From Basidiobolus meristosporus CBS 931.73 (taxonomy: Eukaryota > Fungi > Basidiobolomycota), in NCBI GenBank assembly GCA_002104905.1, contig MCFE01000553.1:1-59103 (forward strand): a DNA stretch of 59,103 nt. The letters run 5' to 3'. This document shows positions 6,798 through 58,500 of this stretch, one piece after another; the first letter of the stretch is position 1, and each line of letters starts with the position of its first letter. Made by a program: the position numbers and the translations under genes. The notes below the pieces were generated by a model, which saw nothing but the letters and a program-made list of their open reading frames with translations, searched no databases and was not told the origin of the DNA.

Positions 6798-8960
6798 ATG
6801 TCAGCTGCTCCAGGTGTTCCTGACTTTGTAAAAAAGCTATACAGGTACCGAATCTGATTATGCCGTACATCACAAATATTAGTGAATTTACACTCGTTCT
6901 TGTTTCAGAATGCTCGAAGACAATTCGTACAGCCACATAGTGTCTTGGGGGCTGAACGGAGATACCTTTGTTGTCAAAGAGCCCAATGAATTCGCCAAAA
7001 CGATTCTACCCAAACACTTTAAACATAGCAATTTCGCGAGTTTTGTTCGTCAACTAAACAAATACGACTTTCACAAGATAAAGAATACCGACGACTCCAA
7101 TAAACCTTATGGTGAACATGTATGTTTCTTGATTGCTTCTACCAAATCCTTGTCAAACACAGGAGGGCACAGGTTAGAATAGACATTAACCTAACGTGAT
7201 TTCTTAGGCTTGGGAATTTCAGCATCCGAATTTCCAATACAACAAATGCGAACTGTTGGAATCGATTAAGGTAAACTCTGAATTCTGAACTAAAGGTGTA
7301 ACTCTTACTCACAAAGTAATTTAGCGGAAAATTCCCAACAAAAGCAAGCCTGGTATTGGTGGTATCGGAACTAGCATGCTTCCTGAAGAAATCAGAATGG
7401 TCGCCGAGGATCTTCAAGGACAGGTTAATTCCGTGTCTAAGTTACAATCAGATATGGGAAATTACCTCCAATCTTTAAGCAAGAATTACCAAGTTATGGT
7501 AGAGGAAATACTAAGTTTCCGGAAAAACATTGTCGCCCAAGACCAGCTTCTTCAAAACATCGTTCAATATGTTCTAAACCAAGACTCAAGTAAGTTGCAA
7601 TATCTACCACAAATCACAAGCAAGTATTGACGTTATCATATCAAAGATCGGAATCGGGAGCAAAAGAACTTAAACGAAAATCCTGGATATGCCCCTCCCT
7701 TCTCCAACGCAAACTCTTCAACTGATATGTTAAAACTACTGAACTCATACAACGAGTTATCAAAAGCATCGCTCAGCCAGGTCGATGATTTCTCAAAAAG
7801 GGCGCAATCTCTTCAAGAGTTTGCCAATACAACACTGTCACAATTTACGGCTCCTATGATGTGTAATGGCGGTGGAGGATTGTTCGGTGGGCACACTGAC
7901 GATTTGAGTGGTGCCGATCTTAGCGGATACAACGGTGGCGACAACACTTTCACTCATCCAAACATCGAAAGCTTAGAAATCTCGCTCAATCAACTTGAGC
8001 ATAGAGACGGCATGAATGAAAAGGCTTTCAATTTCGCTAGTAACCCCATGGATAACAATGGCGTGATACAGGGTAATATTGGAAATCCTTTGGGCAACAG
8101 CAATGCTCCAGCCAAAAATAATGCTCCGAATAATCAACTCCGCAAATCCTCATTTACGCCGAATTGGGCTACTCCACCTAAAGTTCTCTTGGTTGAGGAT
8201 GATGCTGTCTGCAGAAGGTTGAGCACTAAACTGCTTCAAATATTTGGATGTTCATTTGACGTTGCCACCGACGGGGTTGCTGCTGTTAACAAGATGAACC
8301 TAGAGAAATATGATATAGTGCTGATGGTATGCATTACGGATGACTTTATAATTGATAGCACTGTTTTAATCATTTCATTTGCAGGACATTGTTATGCCAA
8401 ACTTGGACGGTGTTTCGGCTACTACGAGAATTCGTCAGTTCGATGCTATCACACCCATTATCTCCATGACATCGAACACAACCGAAAATGATTGCATGAC
8501 TTACCTGGCTAATGGTATGAACGATATTCTTGCCAAGCCGTTTTCGAAAGCTGGTCTCTATGGAATGTTAGAAAAGTATTGTATGCATCTACGCTCTATT
8601 AGAGATATGAACCACATCGGCCGAAACCCTAGTCCTTATCCCGCTCTTTCCACGACATTAATGAACGGAAACCTCTTGAATGATAATGAAGAAGGTACCT
8701 CATCTTCTGCCTCCACCTCCGCACCAATGTCCACGGGTTCTTACTCTACGATCCCAGTCATGAATATGGGTCAAAACAATGGATACAATTTGTCCATGAT
8801 GGCAGGAATTGCCATACCTAACGATGGTTCGATGGGGCAAGGTGCAACTATTATTCCGTCAATCATGTTTGCTGCCAACTCTAATACCCGGCCTTCTGGA
8901 GATTATCCATACGACGATGACGATCGTAGAAAGCGGCCTAGACTGGAAGTGATTGAGTAA
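6798..8960 (+). CDS. SKN7: HSF-type DNA-binding plus response-regulator receiver transcription factor (Skn7/Prr1)
   Basis: MSAAPGVPDFVKKLYR|MLED...WGLNGDTFVVKEPNEFAKTILPKHFKHSNFASFVRQLNKYDFHK (HSF domain), then a coiled coil, then the receiver KVLLVEDDAVCR...YDIVLM|DIVMPNLDG...ILAKPF. About 5 introns. C-terminal basic RRKRPR. Confidence 0.93.
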
Positions 8961-9677
8961 AATCCGGGAAGAGCATCAGGTAGTAATCGACATGCATATT
9001 TTATCCGTTTGCTAGTAATTCTCGCTCCGCCTTTCATACTTCTCAGCCACAATCAGGCTTTGAGAGCGTTCCTACAACTTGAACTTGATCTGGTGACATA
9101 TGCCCAAGCCGCCCGGCCTATGGCTGGTCACAATGGCTCAGCATCGATACATTGATCCTCAAGTTACTTTTATGTGCATTACCATTACTCTCTAAGCTAA
9201 CCTTCAGATTAGTTTATCTTCATGTGTACAAATTTTCTACCCTTGGTACCTTATTTTATCTTGATTTTGTTTTCAATACTTAGCCTATATCGCTCACCTT
9301 GGCTGTCGAATATTTTTGTTGCTTACTTTGATGGCGCGCCAAAGACTTTGTATCCAAAAGATCTCAGACATAAGGTGGATGCTGATTTCTTATTCACATA
9401 ATTGTTAATAAATTCTAGTGACGCAGTTACGACGTACCCTTCGCCATTCTGATTAATCTCAAATCACTCCCTACATGTTATTATGGAGATTACAGCGTGC
9501 CAATCAGTGCTCAGAGACAGTCAAATATTGGATTTTCGGAACACTTTCACCCATATTTTTCCAAGATATGGGTGAAAATACTCGACTGTTAGGTTTAATC
9601 GATTCTCTTTTTTTACATCTATTTTCCTGATTAAGTTGAAAGAAGGCTGGGACTTTGCTTTATTCATTTTTTACACG

Positions 9678-12015
9678 ATGACGAGCAACAGAAAGGAGCC
9701 TTTGTCTTTGGAGGAGCTAATTCGACAAAAAGAGAAAAGCAAAGAGGCAGAGAAGGTACGCGGTCCTTCTCAGGAGCAGAACATCGTTGCGTTGTTGCTA
9801 GCGATCCACTTTTTAACCCTTGTGACCCTTTCTATTTTTAGCCGGTATTTTTGACCAAAGAGCAGCGCGCGAAAATCGCTCTTGAGAAGAGGCAGAGGGA
9901 GGTCGAGGAGATCAAAAGAAAGCAAGAGGAGGAGCGTAAATATCGAGAGCAATTCGAAAAAGAGGCCGAAAAAGAACGTAGATCAGGTTCGTGCTTTTAT
10001 TCAATTTTTGGAATTGACCGACCTTCTAAACAAACAAAAATATACCTAGGCAGAGAAAAGGAACGTGAAAGAGATCGTCGTGATTATCGTGACCGTTCCC
10101 GCGAGAGAGATCGCGGTAGAGATAGACACAGGCATGAGCGACGTAGAGATGGCAGAGACAGAAGTCCTGATCGCCATGCATCTCGGGCAGACCCAGAGAC
10201 AGACCAGGATAGCATCAACAAATTGGGGGACAAGGAATTAGAGCAGATAAGGGTAATTAGCCTTCCAGGTATTTTGTGGTACTTCTACTAATCACAGTTA
10301 CCACCACACAGGAGCGTTACATGGGCGGTGAGCGTCGTAAAAGAAAGATTAGAAAAATGAACGAGAAAAAGTTCGTATTTGATTGGGATGCAAATGAGGA
10401 TACATCCAAGGATGTTAACCCCATTTACTCAGACAGACATGGTGCTCAGATGTTTGGTAGAGGCCATATTGCTGGCATAGACATTGTGGAGCAGAAAAAT
10501 GCTAGATCTGAATTTTATCAAGAGCTGCTGGAGAAGCGAAGAACCGACGATGAGAAACATCGCGCGGAGCTGTTGCTAGAGCGAGAGTCTAAGAGAGAAG
10601 CGAAATCTATGTGGGATGACCGACATTGGTCTGAGAAGCCACTTTCTGAGATGAAGGAGCGTGATTGGAGAATTTTCAAGGAGGATTTCAACATCTCTAC
10701 CAAGGGTGGAAGCTTACCCAACCCTATACGTTCCTGGAACGAATCGGATCTGCCAAACAAGATCCTGGATGTTATAGAGAAGGTTGGGTACAACGAGCCT
10801 ACACCCATCCAAAGACAAGCTATTCCCATCGGTCTTCAGAATCGGGATATTATTGGTATCGCAGAGACCGGTAGTGGTAAAACTGCTTCTTTCGTTATCC
10901 CCATGCTCGTCTTCATATCTCGTCTCCCGCCACTGAACGAAGACAACATGGGTGATGGGCCATATGCATTGATCCTAGTGCCTACTCGTGAACTTGCGCA
11001 GCAAATTGAACAGGAAACACTCAAATTTGCCACACAGCTCGGCTACAACTGCGTATCAATCGTCGGTGGTCATGCTATGGAGGAACAAGCTTTCAATTTA
11101 AGAAATGGTGCAGAGATCATCATCGCGACCCCTGGTCGTTTGAAGGATTGTTTAGATCGACGTGTCCTTGTTCTCAACCAATGTACCTATGTTGTTATGG
11201 ATGAAGCTGACCGAATGATTGATATGGGTTTCGAGCTGGACGTCAACTTTATCCTAGATGCGCTACCGGTTTCGAACATCAAGCCAGAGGTAGAGGATGG
11301 AGAGACTCCAATGGAGCTTTCCGGCAACGATTTGGTCAAATACCGACAAACCACGATGTTTTCAGCTACCATGCCCACAGCAGTAGAAAGACTTGCCAAG
11401 CGCTATTTGCGCAGACCAGCGGTGGTAACCATCGGTACTGCTGGTCAAGCCGTCGATACCGTTGAACAAAGAGTAGAGATGATCAATGAAGAAGGTCGGA
11501 AGAAGAACAGACTGCTTGAAATCCTCAACAGCCAACAGTACGAGCCTCCTATCATCATCTTTGTCAATCAGAAAAAAGGCTGCGATGTGCTTGCTAAAGC
11601 TCTTAACAAACTTGGTTATCGAGTCACCACATTGCACGGCGGCAAGTCACAAGAGCAAAGAGAGTACTCTCTTGCTCAGCTTAAGAATGGTACAATGGAC
11701 ATTCTGGTAGCTACGGATGTTGCTGGGCGTGGTATTGATATCAAGAATGTCTCATTGGTCATCAATTATGACATGGCCAAGAATGTCGAGGACTACACAC
11801 ATAGAATAGGTCGTACTGGCCGTGCTGGTAATAAGGGTACAGCAATCACCTTTTTGGGCAACAACGATACAGATGTTATGTATGATCTCAAGCAAATGCT
11901 ACTGAAGTCCCCGCTTTCCAGAGTGCCACCCGAATTGGCCAACCATGAGGCAGCTCAGATCAAGCCCGGCACATTCAAAGCTAAACGAAAGCACGAAGAA
12001 ACCATCTACACTTGA
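9678..12015 (+). CDS. PRP28: DEAD-box pre-mRNA splicing helicase Prp28/DDX23
   Basis: Motifs [23 protein letters not shown] and [10 protein letters not shown], plus Prp28-specific WDDRHWSEK and [14 protein letters not shown]-rich N-terminus. Introns near 9756-9841, 9988-10050 and 10253-10310. Confidence 0.95.
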
Positions 12016-24364: not shown

Positions 24365-24634
24365 TGTTGTAAGAGTCTTGGAGATATTAGAAGTGATTGG
24401 GAGAACAAGTAGATTATGTGGTTTTCACTTAATGATTTATTGAATGTAAAAGTAGTATTTATACTTACAAAGTTTAGGGCTGTTTGGACAACTTGGAATA
24501 TTTACCCAGAACATGAAAATTCTCAAAGTAAATCCTGACAAGGAATTTGGTCAGTATTCTCTAGGATTTGAAGCTAATGATCTAAGTGACTAAGTTTGGT
24601 GAATATTTAGGCGGAATTACAAACTTTTACAATG
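24365..24634 (-). repeat. Family-1 LTR, 3' LTR of element A, with ~60-bp deletion, 17-bp deletion and internal inversion
   Basis: Aligns to the LTR at 58151-58500. Abuts PPT AGTGGGAG and the RNase H stop. Confidence 0.9.
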
Positions 24635-25584: not shown

Positions 25585-25932
25585 TGTTGCAAAAATTTGT
25601 AATTCCACCTAAATATTCACCTAACCTAGTCACTTAGATCATTACCTTCAAATCCTAGTGAATACTGACCAAATTCCTTGTTGGGATCTACTTACAATAT
25701 TATCACCAAATCACCAGGTACCCAGAACATAAAAATTCTTAAAGGTGTCTAAACAGTCCAAACTTTACACACATGTTCTTGGGACTTTCCTTAACCTATT
25801 CTATGTGTTTGTAATGCCATGACCATGTAAAAGTATGAATACTGCTTTTACATTTAATAAATCATTAAGTGATAACCACACAATCTACTTGTACTCCCAA
25901 TCACTTCCAATATCTCCAAGACTCTTATAACT
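25585..25932 (+). repeat. Family-1 LTR, opposite orientation inside element A
   Basis: TGTTGCAAAAATTTGTAATTCCACC...AAGACTCTTATAACT, full-length match to the other copies. No PBS follows it. Confidence 0.9.
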
Positions 25933-27474
25933 GTATGTGCTACACAATCCAATGGAAGAATGCTATACCTGTATCAAGTGTTTTGATACTGAAATCAATG
26001 TACCAGGAGCTAAATATGGAGCTGTTAGACATGCCATCTCTCTGTTTAAGTCTCAAAACAGTAGGAGTAAGTATTTTACAAATTTAGCAAAATCAACTCA
26101 GGAAGATTCTACCACCAGCCAGAAAGAGTGAAGCAAATGATTGCAAGCCTGGCTGGAGTATACAACCAAGCAACAGTTGGCCAGTATACAACCACAAGCC
26201 ATTTGGAAGATAGCATAGTACTTTATACATGTTATGTGTATATCACTTATCACATTGGAGGCAACACATTGTGACATTTGATTTTCTGGATCAGATCAGA
26301 AGAATTGTGATTGATCAAGTCACTGCCAAGCTCTGCAACTCAAAAAGCTGATATATTGGAGTCTGCTACCCAAGTACTGATGAAACTAGCTTTCAAGTGC
26401 AGTTTATTTGGTCAAATTTGGTCAACTCTATCTAACATTATGATTGATCTAAGTGGATGACAATTTTGATTATATCACTCTCAAATAGTGATATATTCTG
26501 GACCAATGATGTCGTGAGGACTTCTATGCTAAAACACGCTGGGGTACCACCTGTAAGGAAGTCCAGGACCATCCTGCAAAAGGAGTTTCCCTTGGATCAT
26601 CAGCAGAAAAAGAAAACTAGAAAAATGGGAAATGACTACTGCCACAAATTAGGGTACTTCCCAAATGAAGCCAAAACCTTTGTAGGCTATATTTGGACTA
26701 TCTGGCAATGCAGATATTGTTGTGCATCAACATTTAAAACCTAACCTATTTTACTCTGTTAGAAATCTAGTACCCTGACTGATTTTCCCCAACCCAAACA
26801 TAACTAATCCCAGTTGTGGTTTATTTTATCACTTCTCAGAATCTATTTTCAGCTGTCACACCTGATCAATTTTCATGTGGTCATTATGTCCTCAACTGAT
26901 CTGCTAAGCCTTTCTAAGTGATTAGTCATCTGAGATCTATCCAACCACTTGGCAGTTGCCAAGACATCAGCTGATTAATGATGCAATTTTTCATTTATCA
27001 TATGCACCTATGAACACCTCAACAGATTTCAATTAGTCCAATCTCTTGGTGCTTACTAATTCAACTTGGTCAGAAAAATATAAATAAAGTTTACTGAATC
27101 CTTTGGTTTAGTGTGTATCTCAACAAAATGAAGATTGTGCCTCAGCAAAATTAAGAATTCAACAATTCCATTCTAGTTTCTACCCAAGCCTAGCATATCT
27201 AGCACTCTCAAGAACACCAAGCCTAGCCTGCTGTTTTGAATAGACACAAGGTAGGAGAGTAGAGCTAGGTAAGGCAGGACTAGGAAAGAACTTGGATGTG
27301 GATGAACAAGGCAAGATGTGTTTCCAAGGCAAGGCTGTTTATTCAAGACCTGTGTTTATCAGACTGAGGAATGCATAAGGGGGATAAGACTATATCTACT
27401 TTTTGGCAATATGGATGCCAAGAGATATTGGCTAATACTGATGGGGTTCTGGGGTGAGGCACAGTAAGTGTGTC

Positions 27475-27823
27475 TGTTGTAGAAATTTGTAATTCCACCT
27501 AAATATTCACCTAACTTGGTCACTTAGATCATTACTCTCAAATCCTAGAGAATACTGACCAAATTCCTTGTTGTGATTTACTTAAAATATTTTCACCAAA
27601 ATACCAGGTACCCAGAACATGAAAATTCTCAAAGTTGTCCAAACAGCCCCAAACTTTGCACACATGCTCTTGGGACCTTCCTTAACCTATTCTATGTGTT
27701 TGTAATGCCAAGACCAGGTAAAAGTATAAATACTACTTTTACATTCAATAAATCATTAAGTGAAAACCACATAATCTACTTGTTCTCCCAATCACTTCCA
27801 ATATCTCCAACACTCTTACAACA
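27475..27823 (+). repeat. Family-1 LTR, opposite orientation, interrupting the protease region of element A
   Basis: TGTTGTAGAAA...CTCTTACAACA, 349 bp. Flanks are GTGTC / GCATC. Confidence 0.92.
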
Positions 27824-28800: not shown

Positions 28801-29132
28801 TGTTGTAAGAGTCTTGGAGATATTGGAAGTGATTGGGAGGACAAGTAGATTATGTGGTTTTCACTTAATGATTTATTGAATGTAAAAGTAGTATTTATAC
28901 TTTTACATGGTCTTGGCATTACAAACACATAGAATAGGTTAAGAAAGGTCCCAAGAACATGTATGCAAAGTTTGGGGATGTTTGGACAACCTATCTAATT
29001 TTCATGTTCTGGGTTAATATTCTAAGTAAATCCCAACAAGGAATTTGGTCAGTATTCTCTAGGATTGGAAGGTAATGATTTAAGTGACAAAGTTAGGTGA
29101 ATATTTAGGTGGAATTCCGAGTTTTTATAGCA
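28801..29132 (-). repeat. Family-1 LTR, 5' LTR of element A
   Basis: Followed by PBS and gag. Shares the 17-bp deletion (ACCTGGTATTTTGGTGA) with the 24365 copy. Confidence 0.92.
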
Positions 29133-29148
29133 TTTTCAGCGTGCCTTT

Positions 29149-29267
29149 TGCCAAGACTATGTAAAAGTATAAGTATTACTTTTATATTCATTGAATCATT
29201 GATGTGAGAACCACATTATCAATTTGCGCTTCCAATCACTTCCAATATCTTCAAAACTCTTACAATA
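29149..29267 (+). repeat. Partial family-1 LTR (3' third), diverged
   Basis: TGCCAAGACTATGTAAAAGTATAAGTATTACTTTTAT...CCAATCACTTCCAATATCTTCAAAACTCTTACAATA matches the LTR 3' end. Confidence 0.8.
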
Positions 29268-34086: not shown

Positions 34087-35155
34087 TTACGCCAGGCTGG
34101 ATTTTGGTGGGAAATCCTCGGGAAGAGTCATGCACGGCATGCTTGTAAGCGAGGGATCCATATAGGCTGCTCCATTGGGAACAGAGGCATCCTCTACACT
34201 GCTCACGTTGGGAACGGATATTGTGGTCGCTAGGGACGATGTAAAGAACCCGTCCATATTAGCGGGCAGGAAACATGTGTTGCTTCCGTCGTGAAGATAC
34301 ATAGGCTGGTTGAGAATGTCCAGGTCAACCGGCTGAAAAGCCTCCCCTTGCAAGCTATACCCCGCAGAGCTGATCATAAATGGCTCCAAGGCAATGTGTG
34401 CCATAGTGTTGAGGTCGGGGGTAAGCTCCGGCGCCATGTTGAAGTCGTAGCACCCGGAGTTATTGCTGCTTGGTGGTGTAGGCTCTGTGGAATGTGGTGA
34501 ATCGTGCTCACAATCGTCGTCGGTGCTGACCATCTCAGGATCGTCGTCAGATCGCAACTCCATTTTCGCACTACAATCATCATCATGGGTATTGGAATAA
34601 GAGTTCCCTGGGCCTGAGCAGCATTCGTCTACAATATCCACGATAGGTGGTAGCGGGGTGTAGTCGGGCTTAGGTGGTAGGGGGGGAAGGCCCACCTGTG
34701 CCCTTAGCGCATTAAGCTCTTCCCGGAGATTTTTGTTTTCCGAGCGAAGGTTGTCAAACTCACGAACGTATATTCGGGCATTGGATTTGGCCTTTTGAAC
34801 GAAATCTAAGGATTTTTGGACAATGATAGATTTCGAGGGTTTGCGAACACGATGAAGTGAGGGAATAGCCCAGGCGAGTTCCTGGAACTTGTTGTTCAAG
34901 GACTCACGACGTGCACGCTCCACCGCATTATGGTTGGCGCGCTTCTGGGCGGAGTTGATGAACTTTTTGGCCGAACTTCCGTCTAAACGATGGAATGCTG
35001 GTTAGGGGGGCGGGTGATTGAAATGGTTACACAGCTCAAAGCTTACTGGAGGATATCTGAAAAGTGAAGCTTGCGCCTCCGGCATGTCTCTTGGAGGTTG
35101 ATGGAGCAACAGCTGGAAATTGAAGAACACCGGTATTAGCTGCTTCCATTTTCAT
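34087..35155 (-). CDS. bHLH-leucine zipper transcription factor (Max/Mlx-like), 2 exons
   Basis: Exons 35155-35047 and 34982-34087 in phase. KRANHNAVERARRESLNNKFQELAWAIP...KPSKSIIVQKSLDFV, then a zipper LRSENKNLREELNALRAQV. Confidence 0.88.
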
Positions 35156-42099: not shown

Positions 42100-43865
42100 C
42101 TACATGGTATATCGGAATTTGGATAGGACGGACTTTCCTTCCAGCTCAACTGTGGGGTCCTTGTTGAGCCTGTTGTTTTGCCTGATGAGGTAGAAACGCA
42201 ACATGGTGGCTGATGCACTTACTAACAAAAGCATGGATAGATTGATCAAGTGACTCTGAAGATAGCGTGGGGCCTCTTCAGCTCGATACAATTGCCCAGC
42301 AAGGATCCCTACGATGGCAAAATGGGTCAGCTGCTGTTGTACACATTGACACCTCTGCTTACCTCCTAGACTTCCTGCGGATGCCCCCAGGGCCGTTGCA
42401 GTTGCGGTCCTGGTGGAGCCAACCATGTTGTTGGTGAGCCAACTGAGGGAGATAGCACTGTAGGAGAAGGTTCCGATTGCAGTGATGCAAGCAGCCATGT
42501 AGAGAGCGTGAACATCCTGGAATACCATAAGCAACACAAAACCAACTACCCCGATTAAAGGCTGTAGTATGACATGGATTGAACGTTTGTGGCGTCGATC
42601 CGACAAGTAAGACATCGATATACTCATGATGGCGGCCAAAATAAACGGTGGTGAGGTTAACAGCAATGCGTTCATGTTCGCAAAGCCCATGTCGCGAAGA
42701 ATCGTTGGCAGGAGAAGGGAAATGGAAGCCCATGGGGTTGCTTGCCCGAAGCAGATCACCATGTACATCCAAATGATCGGGTCCTTGAACGTATCGAGAA
42801 ATTGTTGTTTATCAAACGTCTTCATCGATTTCTCGCGGAAATCATTCTGCAGCCGATGTGCGGCCAGGGCCTTCTCTCTCTCGGTCAACCAACCTGCTTC
42901 ATTCGGGGAGTCCGGCATAAAAAACCAGGTGAAGATTCCGAGGAATATAGTAGGCGTTCCTTCAACGATAAAGAGCCATTGCCAACCCGAGAGATTCGCG
43001 TATCCAGATAGCTGTATAATCCCATACGAAAACACCCCGCCGAAAGCGCTTGCAAGATTGCTGATCGACGTGAACAGAGCAAACCGCAAGCTCTGCTCCT
43101 TGCCCGTGTACCAGAATGTTAGATAAAAGACGAGTCCTGGGAAGAGCCTAGAGATCGATTTGGATCGTGAGCAGGTAGACGATGGGAGATACACTGTTGT
43201 TTGCTTACCCTGCCTCAGAGAGACCTAAAAAAAACCGGATCGCCATCAATCCTGCGAAATTCTGTACAGCTGCCGTGAATACTGTGCATAGCCCCCAAGA
43301 GATCATGATTCTTGAAATCCATTTTGAGGGGCTAAAGCGCTTGAGTAGCAGGTTGGATGGCACCTCGCAAAAAACGTAACCTGAGGGAGTTCATATCTTA
43401 GTGGGGACGGATTGGGAGATTGTGAGGTAGACAGCCCTACTGATATAGAATACAGACAAACAGAGGGAATACTGGCTTGGGGTGAGATTCAGATCCGCTT
43501 CAAGACCGGCCAGCCGCGCACTACCTAAAACTCAGGTTAACTTCATCTCGAGCTCTGCCAGGCTCCACTTGAAATCACCAACCAATATTCGCGCGATCAA
43601 GCACGGCAAACAGATTCAGTATCCCAGCATACACCAGAACTCGAAAGTCAATCTTCTTGACCAATGCCTTCTCTTCCTCCTCTGTGAAATAGTTGTCGTC
43701 TACAATCAGGTCCTCGGTGTGGCGAGACGCGCCTCCAGCCTTCTTGAGAATCCCTCCGGTCACATCCGTGGCGCCCCTGTTCGACTCGTCGGGAATATCG
43801 CCCTCCCTCATCGGGACATCCCCGACCATGTTCCTAGTCACCAAATCAACTTCGTTGCTCTTCAT
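42100..43865 (-). CDS. MFS transporter, anion:cation symporter (Dal5/Tna1-like) family
   Basis: EEKALVKKIDFRVL, LDRANIG, CEVPSN, LSEAG|LFPG, WQWLFIVEGTP, GWLTEREK and C-terminal FRYTM*. About 4 GT-AG introns. Confidence 0.92.
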
Positions 43866-45040
43866 TAATGTGGCAGATCCAACTTGAATTGATGGATGTA
43901 GAACGAGCAGGGCTCGTATTTAAGCAACCCACATTCCATCCGCATGCCACACGTTTTCGCTCTTTTCAGCATGATTCAAGGGAAAACAAAAAGAGGCTAT
44001 GTCACATGGTGCCCTTCGACAATCCATCAGATGTAAGGTGAAGCACCGGACTACCTGGAGAGAGCATTGGCGAATCCACAGGCACCAACTCCTCTACACA
44101 TATTTGCATCGAATCGCTCAAGCCCTTTTCCTAGATATCCATCTCAAATGCCATTAATATCACTACAATAAGTGGCATTGGGCGAAATCAACACCATGCA
44201 CCCTGGGTCGTTTATGCACTTTCCCGCTTGGCTATTACCACCAGAGCTGCAGCGATTGATTGAGAATGGAATCGGTATTAGAGATTGCCCGAAACCCTCA
44301 TTCCAACGAAAGCTCAGTTGTCGTTTCGCGGAACACTATGCGTAGATTTTCCAATAGCCAACTAGGTGTCACATCACAGGGAGGCCAATTTAGAGCCCGC
44401 ATACCCGATCTGAAAACCATGTTTGCTATTGCAAACCTGACTTTCATACAATTACATCGTCAACTGGATGCAATCTCGCATAGGTCACGTACAGTCCGAT
44501 GAATCAATATATCCGACATGTTCTTGACAGAACATCACCTCGGCGCAAATCATATACAATGCATTGTAGCAAGATACTCGATGCGCCACCTTTGTCCTCC
44601 ATGAAGTCACTGGACGCTTGCGAACGAAACCATGATTTGCCTAAAGACCCGGAGCATTCAAAAATTAAAATTCAAGTCCAGGGTTTTGCAGCTGGGCCAT
44701 TAATCCCCGATGTGGGTGGTGGGGCCCTTGTGACACCAAGACACAACCTATGCCAATGATGGCAGTGAGCACTTGGTATGCTAAGGTTATTCGTACTCTC
44801 AGGACTCGGCTGTATGTTGCTTGGGCTGAGAAATAATCAACTGTGCATGATTAAACCCGAACAAACAACATCGATATCGTACAACATCAGATTTGATCAA
44901 CTACAGTCACCATTTCCCAGGACTGTGTCGAGAAGCAATTCCGCAGTAGATATGACTGTGGGAAGATATTATAAATGTTCAGCAAGCAAGTATATTTATT
45001 TGCCCGTGCAAGGGTATTCACTGCCACCTATTAACCAGCA

Positions 45041-46105
45041 ATGCCCTCAAGCAGTACCTACTCCGTTATACAAACCAACCCAGCACAGACTCATCAAGCA
45101 CACGACAATACCCACGAGGCCTGGGATCGCAATTTAACTCCAGAGAAGTTTCATGAGCGAGAGGATCGTCTAGACAACTGTGAATTTGCTCGAGATAATC
45201 TGAAAACATATGCTCTAATCAGAGCGGACAATCCGGAGACGTTGGATCTCCTGTCGCATCTAGAGGTATTCATCCGACCCGCTCTGGTTAGATTTCCTCA
45301 AAACCCCGGTCAGGTGGAGAGGGTCAAAGCAGCCAGCGTCGCTTCGGTTTTCACGCCGAGCAAGTATCGTCAGAACGGATATGCGAAACAGCTTTTGCTT
45401 GGTGTCCTCGATACTCTGCGAAACCAAGGCATTGTCGTGTCGAATCTGTACTCTGATGTTGGGCCCGAATTATACTCCAGGCTAGGTTGGCGCGTCTATT
45501 CACCCGAACATCTTCAAATTGAGGTCGGCCAACGGAACATAGCGCTGTCTGATATAAATTTGAAGCCCCAACCCATCAAAAATGAGCTACTCGGCAAGAT
45601 TGTGCAACGAGATTGCGAGTTGCTAGAGAAGGAGTTTACGTCAAACGCACAACTGGGCCACAGGAAACCTGCGGTTCTACTTTTGCCCACTGAACCGGTG
45701 TATCATTGGTTTTGGGAGCGCAGTAACTTCTACGCAACCGAGGTGGAAAGCCAACCCAAAATATCCAAGCTAGGTGTCTACCTTCCAGGGACTCCCTATT
45801 TTGCCATTTGGTATCCAGATTATCTAGAAAAATCTCTAGTTGTCCTACGGATAAGACTTCCTAAGGATGATCCCAATGCTATCTTTGAAGCATTCATGCA
45901 CCATGCCAAAGAGGAGGCCATCGCACACAAACTAACCCATGTCGTTATCTGGAATTTAGATCACAATGTATGGAAAGGTCGTTATGATCAGGAGCCGGGG
46001 ATCAATTGGATCACTAGAACTGGGGCGCTTTCATCAATGGCATGGATACCTGATTTAAGCCAAGAGGTAGAATGGTACAACAACGAAAAGTTCTGCTGGG
46101 TCTAA
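45041..46105 (+). CDS. GNAT-family N-acetyltransferase (LYC1-like), intronless
   Basis: 354-aa ORF with acetyl-CoA motif A (VASVFTPSKYRQNGYAKQLL) and SNLYSDVGPELYSRLGW, plus a LYC1-like C-terminal region. Confidence 0.85.
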   Translation: MPSSSTYSVIQTNPAQTHQAHDNTHEAWDRNLTPEKFHEREDRLDNCEFARDNLKTYALIRADNPETLDLLSHLEVFIRPALVRFPQNPGQVERVKAASVASVFTPSKYRQNGYAKQLLLGVLDTLRNQGIVVSNLYSDVGPELYSRLGWRVYSPEHLQIEVGQRNIALSDINLKPQPIKNELLGKIVQRDCELLEKEFTSNAQLGHRKPAVLLLPTEPVYHWFWERSNFYATEVESQPKISKLGVYLPGTPYFAIWYPDYLEKSLVVLRIRLPKDDPNAIFEAFMHHAKEEAIAHKLTHVVIWNLDHNVWKGRYDQEPGINWITRTGALSSMAWIPDLSQEVEWYNNEKFCWV

Positions 46106-47608
46106 GAGGACGTTCTGCGATCTTGAAATAAAGCAAGCAACACGCGTTTTTCACGCCATACTACTGGGAGCCTCATTTGGTGTAGATATGTTTGGTATGG
46201 CGAGTCCAGTAAACATGGACGATTTGTCCGGGTCTGTTCAAATATAGGAACAGGGATATGGGCGCATTGGGAGCAGGATTTATTGCATGCCATAGTAATA
46301 CTGGTAACAAACATTACTTTCCAGAATATGCCCGTTGTATTTCGCAATGCCAATGTGGTCGATACTCCCAATACTTGCTCAATTCATGAAGGGAGCATAC
46401 TGGCAATGAGCTCCCTCCACGAATCAGAAGCCAAAAGAGTCGGATGTTCTCAATACATTTTGCTGTTTTAAATACCAATTCTCTGAACCCGTCGAAGCGC
46501 GAAAGCAGCGACGAAAACGGATCATCTTCCTATCATGCTTCATACAGCGGAAGCGTACCATCGAGCCGAGACGTACATATATAGATGGAAAGCCCGACAA
46601 GAAGTCCATTGCCTTGACATTGATAAGTAATTTCGTCAGGAGCGAGCCCTATTGCAGCCAACCTCCCAGACCAGATCTGAGATGGAAGATATTCCTCGAA
46701 CGGAATTATGTATCAAGAATAGCCACTTCTCGTGAATCAAGTGCTGCATCCCCATAGCCCAAATCAATTCGAGGGCATTTGATTGGTGGTGTAATACTGA
46801 TACAACATCACTTGTGAATGGGGCAGCGAATGGGTATCTGCTTCCAAGGCCAACAGGTTAAAAATATGTTGACCAAAAACGTGCGATCGGTAATGAAGGA
46901 TGGGCAATCGCCCAGGACTGCTGATTAAAAGATTGGTGTTTTTTTGCTGAAATCCTCGTGGAATCGCATATGTGGGATCTGATATGAGCCATCGTATGGC
47001 AGGAGCGTTGCAGTAGATATGAAATTGGCGCCTCTTCCTTGTCAATGGCGCCAGCAATGATGGCCTCCTAATGTCGGGCAGCAGAATTCTAGCTTATTGC
47101 TGCTTGCATGAGCAATCAAACACAGCATAATCCAATGATTTGCGGATAAAACTGATCTGCCGACAGGTGCTGAGCCCAGGTATGATTCCCCTAGTCGACT
47201 GGACATCATGATGTCAACTTGGTTTCATATATGAGGTGGGCTTCGCGGCTGTGTATACAAACAGCGCCAAATGATGAGATGCAGTGCTCGGCAGTCTATC
47301 TGAAACCCTGGTCCGGATTTGGAAAGGCTTCCTTGGTGTGTAGTATTTCGACGTACAAGTAAATAGGAAATTTCCTGATGAAACCTCCGTCCCCTTTTGG
47401 AAAACACTGGCTCATCGCCAGAATCTTGATTCATCATATTAGTTTTTAATTATGTGTAAGACGAGGTAAATAGTGAGGTGGATATTTCGGTTCTACAGTA
47501 TGTGTGCCAAATGGTGGCCTTCAGCGAAGCTATTTGGATACATTGGATGTCTAGTGAGTATGAAGAGGATGACGTTATACAGGTGTAATGCATGGAATGC
47601 GGATGGAT

Positions 47609-48478
47609 TTAGACGGACTTCTTGACCCAGAGTTTGTACGTGCCCAAGGCCCCGGAGATGAAGCCGGCCGATACCTGGAAGGTCTCTGAGAAATCGCATT
47701 TGAAGAAGTCGTATCCGCAGAATGCGAGGTCACCTAGCAGTTTGGCTATGCTTATTCCATTCCAATACATCTTGTCCTGAAGTTTGGGTTTGTCAAGTGT
47801 GTAGGATTCGGTATTGATCTGGCGTTGTAAATCCAGGCGGTCTTTAACGAGCTCGTGTATGTCTAACCAAATGGCCACAAACCACAGCTTTGTAGACAGA
47901 GAATCCGATCGCTTTCCCCAGGACTTTGGAACTACGCCCATCTTGCTCAAGCAGAAGATGTCATCGCTGATGCAGTTAACTACCTCCAGTGTGGACTTGC
48001 AGACGCCGTAAACGTATGCAAGTTTTTCACTGCCGTTCATGATGGAGAAATTCTTGTAAGATCCAGCGAAGACATCCTGCACAGTTCCATAGGGCTCCAG
48101 GAAATTTCCTAGCCGTAGGATTTTCCGCGTGCTCGAAAAGGCGCTCACCATTGAACTCATTCGTTTATATACATTCGGGTACCGCTTTGGGTTTTTTAGG
48201 ACAATTAGGAGCAGGAGCTTGCTGAAGTATTGGATCACCTTGAGGAATTTATCGCGTCCATCGGTTAGAAGTAGGCATTTTTTGAATATGGTCAGTGCAG
48301 AGAGCGTGGGCTTTTTAACCACTTTTGTTTCTACCAGCACTGGTTTCTTTTCGTCCATGAGCAATACTGATGTGTCATAGCCCGCTACTGTGTACTCGGG
48401 CGGGAGAACGAGCCCCGTTGGGACCAACTTCTGGGTAGCCGTGTCCAGGGATACGTTTTGAACGAGATCGGATGCCAT
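47609..48478 (-). CDS. PEX11: Peroxisomal biogenesis factor 11 family protein, intronless
   Basis: TDGRDKFLKVIQYFSKLL, FSSTRKILRLGNFL, ISIAKLLGDL and GFISGALGTYKLW are Pex11 motifs. The start could be 48496 or 48478. Confidence 0.87.
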   Translation of the reverse strand: MASDLVQNVSLDTATQKLVPTGLVLPPEYTVAGYDTSVLLMDEKKPVLVETKVVKKPTLSALTIFKKCLLLTDGRDKFLKVIQYFSKLLLLIVLKNPKRYPNVYKRMSSMVSAFSSTRKILRLGNFLEPYGTVQDVFAGSYKNFSIMNGSEKLAYVYGVCKSTLEVVNCISDDIFCLSKMGVVPKSWGKRSDSLSTKLWFVAIWLDIHELVKDRLDLQRQINTESYTLDKPKLQDKMYWNGISIAKLLGDLAFCGYDFFKCDFSETFQVSAGFISGALGTYKLWVKKSV

Positions 48479-50912
48479 TGTGGATTTGTGGGGCAATGCA
48501 AAGGCTGGTTGACGCGAGTTTTCAATACAAAATGAATTGAAAGAAAAGAATGGATGATGAGATGGCAGGAGCAGCCCGTCAATTTATTCAAATGCAAGAG
48601 ATGTCACAAGGAGTGACTTCTCTGGACAGACACCAAATTAAACCACAATTCGAATCTCAAATTGGCGTTATCTATTTTGAGACCAATGAGTCTAATAACC
48701 TAATGGACGAATCATTGTGTTGTTTCTATTGTATCAACGCCCCTAAGAGTGATAATGCACAGCGTCATATATAGTATGCTTCAATTAGCTTTGTGGAATC
48801 CCATTAATAGAGTAGCACATTCGTTGATGGGCAGATCTATACTGCATTCCCATTCCAATCCCAGCATCGATTATTTCTCAATACATTTCTTCTTGCAGCC
48901 ATAGATGAGGTCGTATTGTGAGGGAAAATGCCGATTGCACATGGTGGCCAGCCTTATCATAGTATCCCACGACTAAGATAGAGAAATGGCAGTCCATGGG
49001 TTACACCTGAGTTTACTAGAACCAAGGCCTGATTTCTGTGATTACGCTAGGCCAATAAAGTGTGCTCTGAAAAGCACTTCGCATGGTAACAACTCAGATC
49101 AGCAACATACCTGGATATGGAACCTCGTAGTGAGTTTAAAAAATCCCCAAGTGAAACCGGGTCAAATCGGGAAATGGAAATTGTACTCTGTTTCAACTCC
49201 AAACATCCCTACACCATGCTGATAAGCCCCACCACCAATCTTTGAAACACTCTCCCATATTTGGGTGGATGTTTATGAACTAAATTTGCTTGTGATATAT
49301 TTAGTTGGCACAAACTGCGTGCTATTAATACACGAGTGGTTTGCTCTTGGATGCACGTTTGATGGGCATCAATCGGAAATTGCATTACCCTAGAACGCAT
49401 CTTCGGCGGGTTGGCCTGCTGGCGACTCTTGAATGACCTGACGTATATATGTTGGTTTCTCCGAATATCACTGGCCATGTTTCACGTGACAATAGCGCAG
49501 AGCTTCAGAGGAACCAGTTGAGATCTAGGTCGGTATGCCATCATGGTTGCGATATGACGGTCTGATAGGCCTTATGATAAGCGGCTCTTGAGGTGAAAGC
49601 AATCATTGTTTGTACCAGCCCACAGCTTTTGTCGTTAGGGCATTCCCCACGTGACTGGGTCGGAGCCAGATAGAGTCGCTGCCATCTCTATCTGATGCTG
49701 TAGGCAGTTCATGCAGCCGCGCCTAATTACTTGGGGCCTAATCCTCCAATGTGGTAATAATGGCTGGTACTTCCTAGATGGCAAGCATGCGAACACGGAT
49801 AATTGCGGATCCAACCAGATGATTGGATATCACTTTATCTTCGAAGCGAGTTGCAGAAGACTCGAATGACAAAGATGCTTGCTGAGGTAACGCGCATAGC
49901 CACTTGGAATGGCAATGCCCGATCACGCTGCTATTAGTGACATGAGCGCGCGATATTGGTGGCCCGTAAATTGGCTGGGGTCAGGAATTTATTTTGATGC
50001 GCGCGCCGAATCTACCATCACAGATGTCTCAGGAAAATGTGGGCTCATGTATCGCATAAGCATTACTATTTATCTCAAGGCGCAAATGGAGTAACGCCAG
50101 TTACCCGTCCCATCGATATTGGCACATTAGAGAGGCTAGAGGGGTTTTTACGTTACATGAGCCTGGCTTATCTGGATATGGCCAGCTGCTCCGCTGATTG
50201 TGTACCAGATGGCTCTTCAGTTTGCGCAAAAGCCATTGGATCAAATTTCGAAACTTCCTGACATTCGGCGGAGATGCCCAATCACCCATGGATCAGAGTT
50301 ATAAATAATGATGTAGGAAAAATAGGTCCTTGAACGCGAATCTGGCCAGCTCGGCCTCTGGATCAAGCAGCTATCTTCAATATCGTGGAGTATTTGTAGA
50401 GTTCCATCCCTGTGACTTGGGTGTCATGAAGAATCACCCAATACGTGATGCAGATTTGAATTGGATAGGGTTGATGTTTCACAAGCAAATCGTTGGGTCC
50501 CTTGACGATGATCTACACCAGGTGATTGAAGACACAGATCCGACTACACTATTAATTCGGCATTTAAATAGCTCCGGAGAGTATATGCAGGTTTTCTCAT
50601 AAGTTTGATTAGTACAACGCCATGCTGGAGACCCAGTTAGTACTCAGCTTTTCCCTGACAAAGCAACAAGTTATACAACTTTTACACAAGTGGCGAATGG
50701 TCCACTCTGTCGGACGCAATTAGGTTGGTCAACCATACTCTCCATCCACACATATTTCATAGAAAAGGATAATTTTCAAATACGCCCAATTCCAATCTAG
50801 TTCGCATTGTTTAACTACGTAATAATATGGTTATTTGGAGCGTCGTCGGAAATATTTCCATGGTGGGGTTTCCTCAACTGCATACAAGGTATCCATAAGA
50901 ATTCCTACAACC

Positions 50913-52889: not shown

Positions 52890-53400
52890 TGTTGTAAATT
52901 TCGTAATTACACCTAAATATTCGCTTAAATTTGTCACTTGGATTGCAGTCTACAAATCTAGGATAATTCAGCCCAAATTCCTTGTTGGGATTAACTTTGA
53001 AATCCTTCATGTCCAGGGTACCTGATATTTTGGTGAGAATCTTCAAAGTTGTAAAGACCACAGTTACATTTAATATATCCTCAAGTGCGATCCACCTAAT
53101 CTACTTGTTCTCCCAATCACTTCCAATATCTCCAAAACTCTTACAACTGGTTATGAGCCCAAGCAATCACTCTCCAGAATCTCTACTACTTTTACTGGAA
53201 TCTTTCCCCTCTGCTGAGAAATTGGATGGATCTAACTACTAAGTCTAGTAGATGATGATGATGATGCTTCAGGAAAGAGGCCTTTGGGATATTGTCATGG
53301 GAGAAGAATGCCATCCTAAAGGTGTGGAAGAAGCCTTCTAGTGCCAGAGAAATGAACAAAGTCCCTTTGACTGCATGTCTTAATGTTAACCCTATGAAGA
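52890..53400 (+). mobile_element. Diverged family-1 LTR variant (52890-53148) plus PBS and truncated gag
   Basis: TGTTGTAAATTTCG...CTCTTACAACT, a perfect GGTTATGAGCCC at 53149-53160, then gag remnant EKLDGSNY*...LQERGLWDIVMGEEC. The TATA region is deleted. Confidence 0.85.
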
Positions 53401-53833: not shown

Positions 53834-54182
53834 TGTTATAAAAATCTGTAATAATACCTAAATATTCACCTAACTTAGTCACTTAGATCATTACCTTCAA
53901 GTCCTAAAGAATACTGACCAAAATCTTTGTTGGGATTTACTTAGACTATTTTCACCAAAATATCAGGTACCCAGAACATGAAAATTCTCAAGGTTGTCCA
54001 AACATCCCCAAACTTTGCACATATACTCTTGGAACCTTCCTAAGCCTATTCTGTGTGTTTGTTATGCCAATATCATGTAAAAGTATATATACTACCTTTA
54101 CATTCAATAAATCATTAAGTGAAAACCGCATAATCTACTTTTCCCCCCAATCACTTCCAATAACTCCAAGACTCTTAAGATA
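53834..54182 (+). repeat. Family-1 LTR, 5' LTR of element B
   Basis: Full-length match, followed by GGTTATGAGACC (PBS, 54183-54194) and gag. Confidence 0.9.
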
Positions 54183-57100
54183 GGTTATGAGACCCAAGCT
54201 GTCATTCTCTGCAATGTCTACTACTGCTCTCACTGTAATATTTCCCTCTGTAAAAAGCTGGAAGGATCTAACTACCAAGTGTGGAAGGTGAAGATGAAGA
54301 TGGTGCTAGAAGAAAGAGGCCTTTGGGAAATTGTCATGGGAGAAGTATGCCCTATTAAAAGTGTAGGAGAGGCAGCCTTAAAGTACCAGAAGAAAGAACA
54401 AAGTGTCTTTAAGTGCATGCCTCAGTGTCAAAGACAAATTGCTAATTTAATGCTCAAGAGCAAAAACCACAAAGAATGCCTGGAAGGGATTAGAAGACAC
54501 ATACCAGTCATATTCAGCAGCTCAATATTGAGTGAAAATGGACAGAATTAGCATTGTGAATCAGCAATCACAATATATACAAGTTACAATGCAAGATCAA
54601 TATAGCTGAGTATGTCAACATTGATGAAACTGATGAAACAAGCTGGGAGATGTGGCATAGGAGGCTAGGACACATTGGGCAATAGAAAATGAGCCAATTG
54701 GAGAAAAATCAGCTTGTTTTGGGCCTAAATTACCCAATTTCAGTCAAATTAAGTGTCTGTCAGGGATGTTCATATGGTAAACAAGCTAGGCAACATTTCA
54801 GGAGCTCAGGAGGCATTAACACCACCAATGTATTGGCTATTGTGCACTCAGATATATGCAGGCCCATGAGAACACTGCTGTTTGGAGCCAAGAGATACTT
54901 TATGATATATATTGATGACAAGACAAGATGTACATGAGTGTACTTTCTCAACACAAAGAACAAGGCTTTAGAGATGTTTTGGCACTTCAAGAACATGGCA
55001 GAAACACAAGCTGGGTGTAAATTGAAGGTTATTTGAAGTGACAATGGAGGGGAATACTGCTCAAGGGAGTTTGCAAAATACTGCTCATCTACTGGCAAAC
55101 TATGGCAGAACACTATTCCACAAACCCCACAGCAAAATAGCGTAGCAGAATGTGCAAATAGAGATGGTAAGATCTATGGTACATGAAAAGGGAATGGACT
55201 ACAAGATCTGGGCTGAATCTGTTGCTACTACAGTATACATCAAAAATAGATGCCCTACAATGGGACTGCTTGTTTCATCACCCTTTGAAGCAAGAACCAG
55301 ACCTCCAGAACCTCAGGATCTGTGGCAGAGATGTTTTCTATCACATCCCTGACAAAAAATGCTATAAGCTGGAACCAAAGAGTAGAAAAGGGATCTTTCT
55401 TGGGTATTGTGAGGACACTAAAGGGTATAGGGTGTATGATGGCAAAACTCAGAAGCTGATCAAGAGCAGGGATGTTGTAGTTGAAGAGAATTCAGATCAG
55501 AAAGCCACTTAACTCATTGGCCAGCTGACTGATAATGCAATCAATGCTAATGAAGAAAATACATACCTAATTCAGCCAGATATGGAAGATAATTCTATCA
55601 GTTCCAGAGCAGAGCAGATTACTCCAGTTAGGAGATCTACCAGAATAAGAAATGCCCTTGGATCTTGGTGGCAGACATCCAATAATCATCAAGAGGCTTA
55701 TCTTGCCTTATGTGCTAAACATCAAAATCTGGAACAGGCAGTGCAAGGTCCAGATGCTACTATGTGGCAACAAGCCAAGCAGGAGGAGTACCAATCACTG
55801 ATAAGGGCAAAAATATGGGAGCTGGTAGATTTACCAAATGGGAGAAAGTCAATAGGATATAGATGGAGCTACAAGATCAAGATAACCTCAAATGTTACCG
55901 TTGATAAATACAAAGCTAGATTGGTGGCTTAAGGCTATGCCCAGATCCAGGGACTAGACTTTAAGTAAACATTTGCTCTGGTAGCCAAATTTAACTCCAT
56001 TAGGGCAATTCTAACCCTGGCAGCTGTACAGAGTCTAGATCTACACCAAATGGACATCAAAACAGCTTTTCTAAATGGGGATCTGCAAGAAACTATATAT
56101 ATGGAGTAGCCTGAAGGCTTTACCAATCTAAAAGACCCCCATAAGGTGTGCAGACTTGAAAAATTACTATATGGGCTTAAACAGGCATCCAGAGCATGGT
56201 ATAGCAAGATTGACCCATATCTTGAGGAGATTGGGTTCATTTGTAGCACTGCAGGACACAGTATATATGTGAAGCAGCTTAAAAAGGCAATGATTACCCT
56301 GGTACATTGTGCAGAGAGCCTAATAATAGCTACAAGTGACCAGCAGGCACTTGAACAGAAAAAATCAGATCTCTTCAGCAAGTTTGAGATGAAAGATCTT
56401 GGAAAACTGCGCTATTTCTTGAAATTGAAGTCACATTTGACATAGCTATGCAGCAAATTGTGTTGAATCAGTCTGGGTACATTAGAGACATTTTCAGATG
56501 CTTCAAAATGAAAAATTGCAAGCCTGCAGCTACACCTAGGGACAATAATCTAAATTTGAGCAAATCTCAGCTAGTTTTAGGTGAAAACAGCTCAAATATG
56601 GACCAAACCTTTCCCTATCAGTTGATGGCTGGTAGTTTGATGTACTTGATGGTGTCTACACATCCAGATATAGCAGTGGCAGTTGAAATGGCTGGTTAGT
56701 TGATACAGAATTATGGATCTGCTCAAATTACAGCAGTTAAGCAATTCTTCAAATATCTGCAAGGTATCATTGATATGGTTCTGGAATACTCTGGAACAAC
56801 CAATAGGCATAGCTTTAATGACTATAGTGATTTAGATTGGGGTAGGATCTAATTGGCAGATGCTCTATCACTGGGCATGAAATTTTATATGCTGGTGTTG
56901 CTATTACTGGGAATTGCAAGAAACAACCAACTGTGGACCTATCTACCATGAAAGCTGAGCATATTGATGCTTGTGAAGCAACTAAGGAGGCTATATGGCT
57001 ACAAATATTATTCAAAGGCCTAGGTCTTATCTCAGATGAACTGAGATGTATTTACAAAGATAAACAAAGTTGTGTTACATTAACTGGGAATCCTACTAAT

Positions 57101-57295
57101 CATGCCAGAACTAAGCATATAGATATAAAACATCACTTTGTGAGGGAAGCTGTAGAAAGTATCTTAGTAGAGCTAGTTTACTGCCCAACTGACAAAATGG
57201 TAGCAGATATATTGACAAAACCACTAGCTAGACCACAATTTGAGAATCTCAGAGAGGAATTAGAACAAAGTTATTTACTTGAGGGGGAGTACTGA
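53834..57295 (+). mobile_element. Degenerate Ty1/copia element B (gag fragment, integrase, RT, RNase H)
   Basis: gag 54187-54521, WHRRLGHI (~54652), VHSDICRPM, DNGGEY, PQQNSVAE, YKARLVA*GYAQ, QMDIKTAFLNG, LYGLKQASRAW, KHIDIKHHFVRE, ADILTKPL. PPT GAGGGGGAG at 57281-57289. Many stops and frameshifts. Confidence 0.92.
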
Positions 57296-58150
57296 AATAT
57301 TGGACTACTTGGTATCATTCAGCAGCTAAAAATTTAACAACTCTAGACTAGTCTTGGTCACTGTAGGACTAATTTAGAGCCCTAACCTTGCCACTTTCTT
57401 CAGATCTATGATCCTATGCTTATTTCCCTATAGACAAGATCAAATTAGCACTTTTACCTAACATTTGACTTGTTCCATTTCACCATGCCAGGGAGCACAG
57501 CACAATCTGTGGTTTCTAAGAACAATTGGGTGCAATATTGAAGCTACCAATAGGTTGGATTGCTCTTGGACAATCTTGAACACTATGGCACAATCTGACA
57601 TGATAAGGTTGACATGGATGATTGTGCCAACTTGTAATGTTTACACCACATGTGCAATTAGATACCATTATTATGGTAGGTAAAGTCCAGTATTTGGATA
57701 TGTTTGTTTAATGTAAATGGAAATAAATGCATATCACACAATGAGCTACGCTGATACTTACTAATTTGGTTACCATCACTCCAATTGGATGGTATCTCAG
57801 TGGTTAATTGATCCAAAAGTCTCCTGAAGCTGTCAGCCCCCAATTGGCTCTTTGACCAATATACAAGCTACCTGATTCATCATAAATATCCCATTTTGCC
57901 CATTGAGCAACGGAATCCCTGACCCTAGTGATTGGACAAGCTGGCATAGCTAGCACACAACCAACTGGACATGTGCGCAATAGATCAAATGACTGCACTG
58001 GTGTTACAGATGATGTATATATATACAGGGTGTTTATTTATAGTGGCTCTGTCTCAAATGTGAGACAACCTTGATATTACTTGTATCAGAAGTTTAGTGA
58101 TCACTGATTTGCAATGGCTTAGTTTGGATTGCAAAAAAATGTGTTGTTTG

Positions 58151-58500
58151 TGTTGTAAGAGTCTTGGAGATATTGGAAGTGATTTGGAGAACAAGTAGAT
58201 TATGTGGTTTTCACTTAATGATTTATTGAATGTAAAAGTAGTATTTATACTTTTACATGGTCTTGGCATTGCAAACACGTAGAATAGGTTAAGGAAGGTC
58301 CCAAGAACATGTGTGCAAAGTTTGGGGCTGTTTGGACAACTTTGAGAATTTTCATGTTCTGGGTACCTGGTATTTTGGTGAAAATATTCTAAGTAAATCC
58401 CAACAAGGAATTTGGTCAGTATTCTCTAGGATTTGAAGGTGATGATCTGAGTGACTAAGTTAGGTGAATATTTAGGTGGAAAATACGAATTTTTACAACA
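58151..58500 (-). repeat. Family-1 LTR, 3' LTR of element C (350 bp, TGTTGTAA...TTACAACA)
   Basis: Perfect 8-bp terminal inverted repeat, TATAAATA and AATAAA signals, PPT AGTGGGAG at 58508-58501. Confidence 0.95.

Follow-up and report, generated by a model that had tools for sequence, protein, structure and literature searches.

Can a short segment of a retrotransposon turn round in place, and if it can, does the inversion record an accident of DNA synthesis or the working of a switch? The question is raised by 59,103 nt of nuclear DNA from the early-diverging fungus Basidiobolus meristosporus (the whole stretch analyzed, hereafter the window), where a first-pass annotation had described a 56-bp quasi-palindrome in the U3 region of a repeated long terminal repeat (LTR), five copies having it in one orientation and two in the other. 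The annotation saw in this a recurrent flip-flop site, and offered as explanation either a template-switch hotspot acting in reverse transcription or replication, or a two-state promoter module. Here the LTR copies were collected by repeat finding, BLASTN and alignment (Table 1). Our preferred reading is that the segment is a mutational weak spot, which was inverted as a whole, in place and in chromosomal DNA, at least once and probably twice independently, and that the flips are neutral lesions produced by template switching.

All the copies belong to one Ty1/copia LTR family of about 350 bp, with seven copies (A to G) and one remnant (H) in the window. They lie in nested Ty1/copia elements forming two clusters, at 24.3–29.3 kb and 52.9–59.1 kb, and pieces of protease, integrase, reverse transcriptase (RT) and RNase H are found in copia order. 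The LTRs begin with TGTTG and end with CAACA, thus having the TG...CA termini of Ty1/copia LTRs. A primer-binding-site-like GGTTATGAGCCC follows LTRs C, D and F, and a purine-rich GAGTGGGAG precedes LTRs E and G. The ORF after LTR F matches the Pfam families DUF4219 and Retrotran_gag_2; in the D element, as read by eye without a Pfam scan, integrase-like ORFs precede RT-like and RNase H-like ORFs. The LTR ends, primer-binding site, polypurine tract, gag and domain order all fit, and on these sequence features the host element is classified as a Ty1/copia LTR retrotransposon. Six of the LTRs (A, B, D, E, F, and G) are 84–98% alike. The outlier is C, with an identity to the others of 72–77% in the 5′ part and 76–86% in the 3′ part; its gag is interrupted by stops. 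LTR G, which is full-length, served as the reference copy for comparisons. In a protein word search of a large collection, the RNase H end had thousands of copia-like relatives, the best of them only 74–80% identical and on short contigs, so this genome is not closely represented in that collection. Exact-pattern scans of metagenome contigs gave no match for the U5 block and none for the loop/arm sequence, and Rfam returned no family in the window.

Table 1. LTR copies of the family and their U3 segments in the window (arms, matching positions between the two 16-nt arms).
Feature	Position	Strand	Length	Orientation	Arms	Remarks
LTR A	25585-25932	+	348 bp			abuts RT coding sequence of the E/F element
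LTR B	27475-27823	+	349 bp			abuts protease coding sequence of the E/F element
LTR C	52890-53148	+	259 bp			5′ LTR, then primer-binding site and broken gag
LTR D	53834-54182	+	349 bp			5′ LTR with primer-binding site and gag
LTR E	24365-24634	-	270 bp			3′ LTR, preceded by polypurine tract and RT/RNase H coding sequence
LTR F	28801-29132	-	332 bp			5′ LTR, then primer-binding site, gag (DUF4219, Retrotran_gag_2) and protease
LTR G	58151-58500	-	350 bp			3′ LTR, preceded by polypurine tract and RNase H end
Remnant H	29149-29265	+				3′ LTR remnant without the segment
Segment A	25690-25745	+	56 bp	unflipped	9/16	
Segment B	27580-27635	+	56 bp	unflipped	12/16	
Segment C	52994-53049	+	56 bp	flipped	11/16	
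Segment D	53939-53994	+	56 bp	unflipped	12/16	
Segment E	24491-24529	-	39 bp	flipped		17-nt internal deletion; arms swapped too
Segment F	28989-29027	-	39 bp	unflipped		17-nt deletion
Segment G	58339-58394	-	56 bp	unflipped	13/16	

The segment occupies LTR positions 106–161 in U3 and is A+T-rich, with two 16-nt arms around a 24-nt spacer (the loop). Its description in the first-pass annotation was borne out, the stated coordinates, counts and second flipped copy being all correct. The TATA box, said to lie about 90 bp downstream, starts as a TATAAATA box 89 nt downstream of the segment in copies B and G; the claimed arm complementarity of 13/16 is that of G, and A, B, C, and D have 9–12 matches; and A, B, D, F, and G do share one loop orientation. 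Compared with the four full-length unflipped copies (A, B, D, and G), segment C matches at 21–27 of 56 positions forward and at 40–46 when reverse-complemented, while unflipped copies among themselves give 46–55 matches forward and 23–27 reversed. With G, the count for C is 46/56 reversed (about 45 had been claimed) versus 27/56 forward. The loop alone gives 2–3 matches of 24 between C and the full-length unflipped copies forward and 19–22 reversed (3 and 21, respectively, with G). The second flipped copy, which had been placed at 24491, is equally clear: segment E matches G without the 17 deleted nucleotides at 38 of 39 positions reversed versus 22 forward. By the same measure, F matches at 33/39 forward and 19/39 reversed.

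BLASTN, unprompted, returned opposite-strand alignments for the flipped segments with collinear flanks. This upholds the statement that the flanks of C stay collinear, although on the right side only about 3 nt do so before a gap of about 89 nt. A 24-nt loop/arm probe matches E on the strand opposite its LTR, where no chance hits are expected. The inversion preserves length: 56 nt remain 56 nt, and both E and F have 39 nt. The flips are real, and the matches go well beyond what chance would give.

The hairpin itself is a weak structure. Folded as DNA, the 56-mers gave −0.6 to −4 kcal/mol (z −1.0 to +0.9), and the two arms pair with each other in the optimal DNA fold of G and C only. In RNA folding the arms do pair, but z reaches only −0.9 to −1.4. 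An inverted repeat matching at 13/16 positions (16-nt arms, loop of up to 40 nt) was obtained from 16 of 300 dinucleotide-shuffled versions of the G LTR (~5%), and one matching at 12/16, the level at which this comparison placed B and C, in about one third of them. The arms drift between copies without compensatory change, and arm comparison, DNA and RNA folding and the shuffles gave no sign of selection on arms or fold. The repeat is not a conserved structural element; its relevance lies solely in the fact that the inversions start and end exactly there. When the segment of G (58339-58394) was folded as RNA, the strand of flipped orientation had −11.1 kcal/mol and the usual sense −5.4 kcal/mol, a difference due to G-U pairs; neither value is significant against shuffles.

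The anatomy of E locates the ends of the inversion. In all copies the segment starts with ACTT and ends with AAGT. The left arm of E is identical at 16/16 positions to the reverse complement of the usual right arm, and what survives of its right arm corresponds, apart from one change, to the usual left arm reverse-complemented. The three arm positions that normally distinguish the two arms (5, 8, and 9) have all switched sides. It follows that the whole 39-bp unit was inverted, rather than the spacer alone, with both junctions in the outermost bases, ACTT/AAGT. For E, a crossover between its arms is disfavored, because it would be expected in their longest shared run (the inner 7 bp) and would have left the outer markers in place, whereas the exchange of the arms is complete. 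This exchange would also be compatible with breaks at the base of the repeat followed by rejoining. The arms of C are too diverged to place its junctions relative to them.

Further lesions cluster at or next to the segment, namely the 17-nt deletion, a 62-nt gap in LTR E and the 89-nt gap in LTR C. Segments E and F lack the same 17 nt, and the best start of the deletion is identical in both; because F has an extra T>A change at the junction, the two deletions are presumed rather than shown to be strictly identical. The gap in LTR E starts 24 nt downstream of the segment, between it and the TATA box, and that in LTR C removes the canonical TATA / TATAAATA box. When each was aligned with a single long gap, the E gap was nested in the C gap, their ends differing by 21 nt on the left and 6 nt on the right in a region where the alignment of C is ambiguous. 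Both flipped LTRs thus lack sequence between segment and TATA box (24400-24490 in E; 53050-53060 in C), either through one complex event together with the flip or by coincidence. The right arm of F (28989-29004, minus strand) carries a multinucleotide cluster of five substitutions within 8 nt. A template-switch copy from within the LTR was tried as its source and gave no significant result, with a score of 16 against a 95% null level of 18. Two other derivations were discarded for E. LTR A was considered as the donor of its flipped segment, but E has neither the private changes of A nor a full-length segment. A chimeric origin was suggested by the 98% identity of its 3′ part and the 84–89% identity of its 5′ part, but the same contrast exists among B, F, and G.

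Do the two flipped copies represent one event or two? To see whether they group together, a substitution tree was built from the flanks of the LTR copies, with the segment excluded and no outgroup. This tree is a star without support for any inner branch; it rejects neither C+E as a clade (AU p = 0.36) nor E+F (p = 0.11), and no parsimony-informative substitution places E. More can be drawn from position and from the deletion. E and F share a strand, are separated by 4.1 kb and are ordered as the 3′ and 5′ LTRs of one element would be; the interior is rearranged and contains LTRs A and B, both on the plus strand, together with 1.5 kb of unrelated sequence. No target-site duplication was found for E/F (the outer 5-mers, CTAAC and TTTTC, differ), and none pairing A with B; the missing half of remnant H was not found to the left of E. 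E and F are probably the two LTRs of one old minus-strand element, which would have inherited the deletion before E flipped. Since they carry the same 17-nt deletion in opposite orientations, their pairing as LTRs of one element implies a second flip, independent of that of C and later than integration. The post-integration timing of the E flip is accordingly stated as probable: it rests on one rare character in a pair with no target-site duplication. The direction of change in E, from unflipped to flipped, likewise comes from its probable partner F and the deletion common to both. On balance, two independent flips in the family, one separating C from the rest and one in E, are likely on the sequence evidence. 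As for the annotation's recurrent flip-flop site, recurrence is therefore likely, though unproven, on the E/F deletion and receives no help from the star-shaped tree; in this probable pair the 5′ and 3′ LTRs disagree in orientation.

The most serious competitor is a single ancient inversion, by which C and E would descend from one flipped lineage and the other five copies from the unflipped one, the 17-nt deletions of E and F being separate events. The C+E clade permitted by the flank tree agrees with such a descent, as does the loss in both flipped copies of sequence between segment and TATA box, with the E gap inside the C gap. The gap ends do not coincide, however, and none of the 10 substitutions of C within the segment is found in E. 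The same 17 nt would have had to be deleted twice independently with only 1 nt of microhomology, and the placement of E and F as two LTRs of one element would remain unaccounted for. We regard a single inversion as unlikely, though it is the best placed of the alternatives.

An event during retrotransposition is less probable still. U3 is copied twice in reverse transcription, and reverse transcriptases readily switch templates; a switch at a U3 hairpin would leave the two LTRs of the new copy in the same orientation. As a 3′ LTR, E has the U3 that is transcribed, and C could stand for a whole flipped subfamily. If E and F come from one insertion, however, their LTRs disagree, which a pre-integration event cannot produce. 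Inversion in place would moreover need copying of the same-sense strand, unlike the usual strand transfer of reverse transcriptase, and BLASTN found no second copy of either flipped form in the window. The annotation's proposal of a template-switch hotspot in reverse transcription or replication is supported as far as the hotspot is concerned, given that the inversions are in place, length-preserving and bounded by inverted repeats, with other lesions clustered around them; as to the stage, the E/F deletion points to DNA replication or repair and away from reverse transcription.

Inter-strand template switching is the most likely mechanism, as judged from the sequence of one assembly. One flip would fall on the branch between C, an old and divergent copy, and the remaining copies, and the other in copy E. 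In replication or in repair synthesis, the growing strand would halt at the foot of the inverted repeat, re-pair through the outer ACTT/AAGT with the opposite strand, copy the segment backwards and then return to its original template. Junctions within the outer 4 nt fall where a template hairpin would be expected to arrest the polymerase, at its base. Several points weigh against this reading. Only seven copies are available, and the star-shaped flank tree rejects neither the C+E nor the E+F clade. Without a target-site duplication and with a rearranged interior, E and F are unproven as a single insertion. In thermodynamic terms the repeat is weak, and a spacer of 24 nt exceeds the 2–8 nt typical of documented template-switch inversions. 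We nevertheless consider template switching, acting on decaying LTRs, the probable origin of the flips, which would then be neutral lesions rather than states of a regulated switch.

A regulatory role for the flips can be framed in two ways. In the first, U3 would flip and flop at a high rate after integration, with the orientation altering the LTR enhancer or the RNA structure of the 3′ end. If this were true, replication template switching would have generated a heritable, reversible two-state regulatory element with no recombinase, but we think it very improbable. In the second, which is more doubtful again, the segment would be a programmed, invertible promoter or enhancer module of the retrotransposon, as the first-pass annotation had considered. 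Both orientations do exist, the segment lies in U3 at 89 bp upstream of the TATA box, and its flipped sense folds somewhat better as RNA (see above). The facts otherwise speak against a module of this kind: no site-specific recombinase is encoded nearby, the ORFs around all copies coding for copia gag, protease, integrase, RT and RNase H or belonging to unrelated host genes; the segment does not contain the TATA box; the match between the arms is imperfect and decays (9–13/16), with no compensatory change; the fold is no better than that of shuffles; and both flipped LTRs are crippled, C lacking the TATAAATA box and E 62 nt of U3. Finally, an artefact of assembly or alignment, or a chance resemblance, is scarcely credible even for repeat-rich nested transposon clusters that are hard to assemble, as each flipped copy has its own, uniquely diverged surroundings, the matches go far beyond chance (loop 21/24 vs. 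3/24; no chance probe hits expected), and an in-place inversion of 39–56 bp is not a usual assembler error.

Mutation by template switching at quasi-palindromes is described by the Ripley model. Programmed inversion of promoters is exemplified by the bacterial invertons, such as fimS, and by the FLP system of the yeast 2-micron plasmid. The segment resembles an inverton in that inverted repeats flank it, a transcription start lies downstream of it and both orientations occur, but it has no recombinase, its repeats are imperfect and decaying, the promoter core lies outside it, and the two states are found at different loci. It also recalls the flip/flop terminal hairpins of parvoviruses, in which the asymmetric interior of a palindrome has two orientations. 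Those hairpins, however, are terminal, and hairpin-primed replication gives both states in each round, whereas the segment is located 105 nt into an LTR and plays no part in priming.

Closer parallels are spacer inversions between short inverted repeats, as described in four papers. In Saccharomyces, such inversions recur in parallel and revert (“flip”), and longer arms favor them (Abraham and Hazkani-Covo, 2021; PMC8604942). A human–chimpanzee comparison yielded spacer inversions implying inter-strand switches (Loytynoja and Goldman, 2017; PMC5453318), and loop inversions have been reported for rRNA and microRNA hairpins (PMC8794818). In plastid spacers, homoplasious small inversions between inverted repeats have long been known (Kelchner and Wendel, 1996, cited in PMC2903610). 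The events in the window agree with template-switch spacer inversions in that they are in place, keep their length, are bounded by short imperfect inverted repeats and have junctions in an inverted microhomology of a few bases; the known events recur, revert and occur in nuclear DNA, including that of fungi. They differ in the 24-nt spacer (56 nt with the arms, against the usual 2–8 nt), in the arms of E, which were exchanged and not made alike, and in their setting, which is a retrotransposon LTR U3 where paralogous copies rather than orthologous loci are compared. The minute inversions of chloroplast hairpins (trnH-psbA) are similar in that loops of tens of bases flip repeatedly and homoplasiously, are neutral and mislead alignments, but they belong to an organelle and have mostly perfect stems with a presumed role in mRNA stability, whereas the segment belongs to nuclear DNA, its stem is weak and nothing points to a function.

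A full-text literature search for inversions of this kind in LTRs or retrotransposons returned nothing specific. The annotation's impression that the phenomenon had not been described holds for LTRs only; for spacer inversion as such, repeated flips included, the papers above contradict it. The flips are a fresh instance of an already known mutational type; what is unusual is where they occur and how long the inverted tract is.

These flips reveal no novel regulatory device. They offer, in the nuclear DNA of an early-diverging fungus, a clean example of a short inverted repeat causing in-place inversions and neighboring deletions, and they indicate that micro-inversions can be read from paralogous LTR copies. 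A flip of 56 bp reads as about 30 substitutions; it inflates divergence and can mislead LTR dating, subfamily calls and alignments. If the pairing of E and F is true, the flip in E is dated to after integration, which favors replication or repair over reverse transcription.

The neighborhood of the copies shows further rearrangement. The 1.5 kb between LTRs A and B (25585-27823) shows no similarity to copia sequence, and the host element lacks some 2.3 kb, covering integrase and RT; the region suggests two nested insertions followed by a deletion. The outer end of F lies 16 bp from remnant H (29133-29265), an older plus-strand LTR of the same family that is truncated at about LTR position 233, some 18 bp before its TATA box. 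Element D (53834-58150) seems to be a chimera. Its LTR and initial ~340 nt of gag have 85–89% DNA identity to F, its RT/RNase H has only 40–62% protein identity to the pieces upstream of E and G, and the end of its RNase H (57295) is followed by no 3′ LTR, but by 850 bp of unrelated DNA and then the opposite-strand LTR G. Between the transposon clusters, host genes (7727-12015, 34087-34923, 42100-48496) include a response-regulator-like ORF, a DDX23-like DEAD-box helicase, an HLH protein, an MFS transporter, a LYC1-like GNAT acetyltransferase and PEX11.
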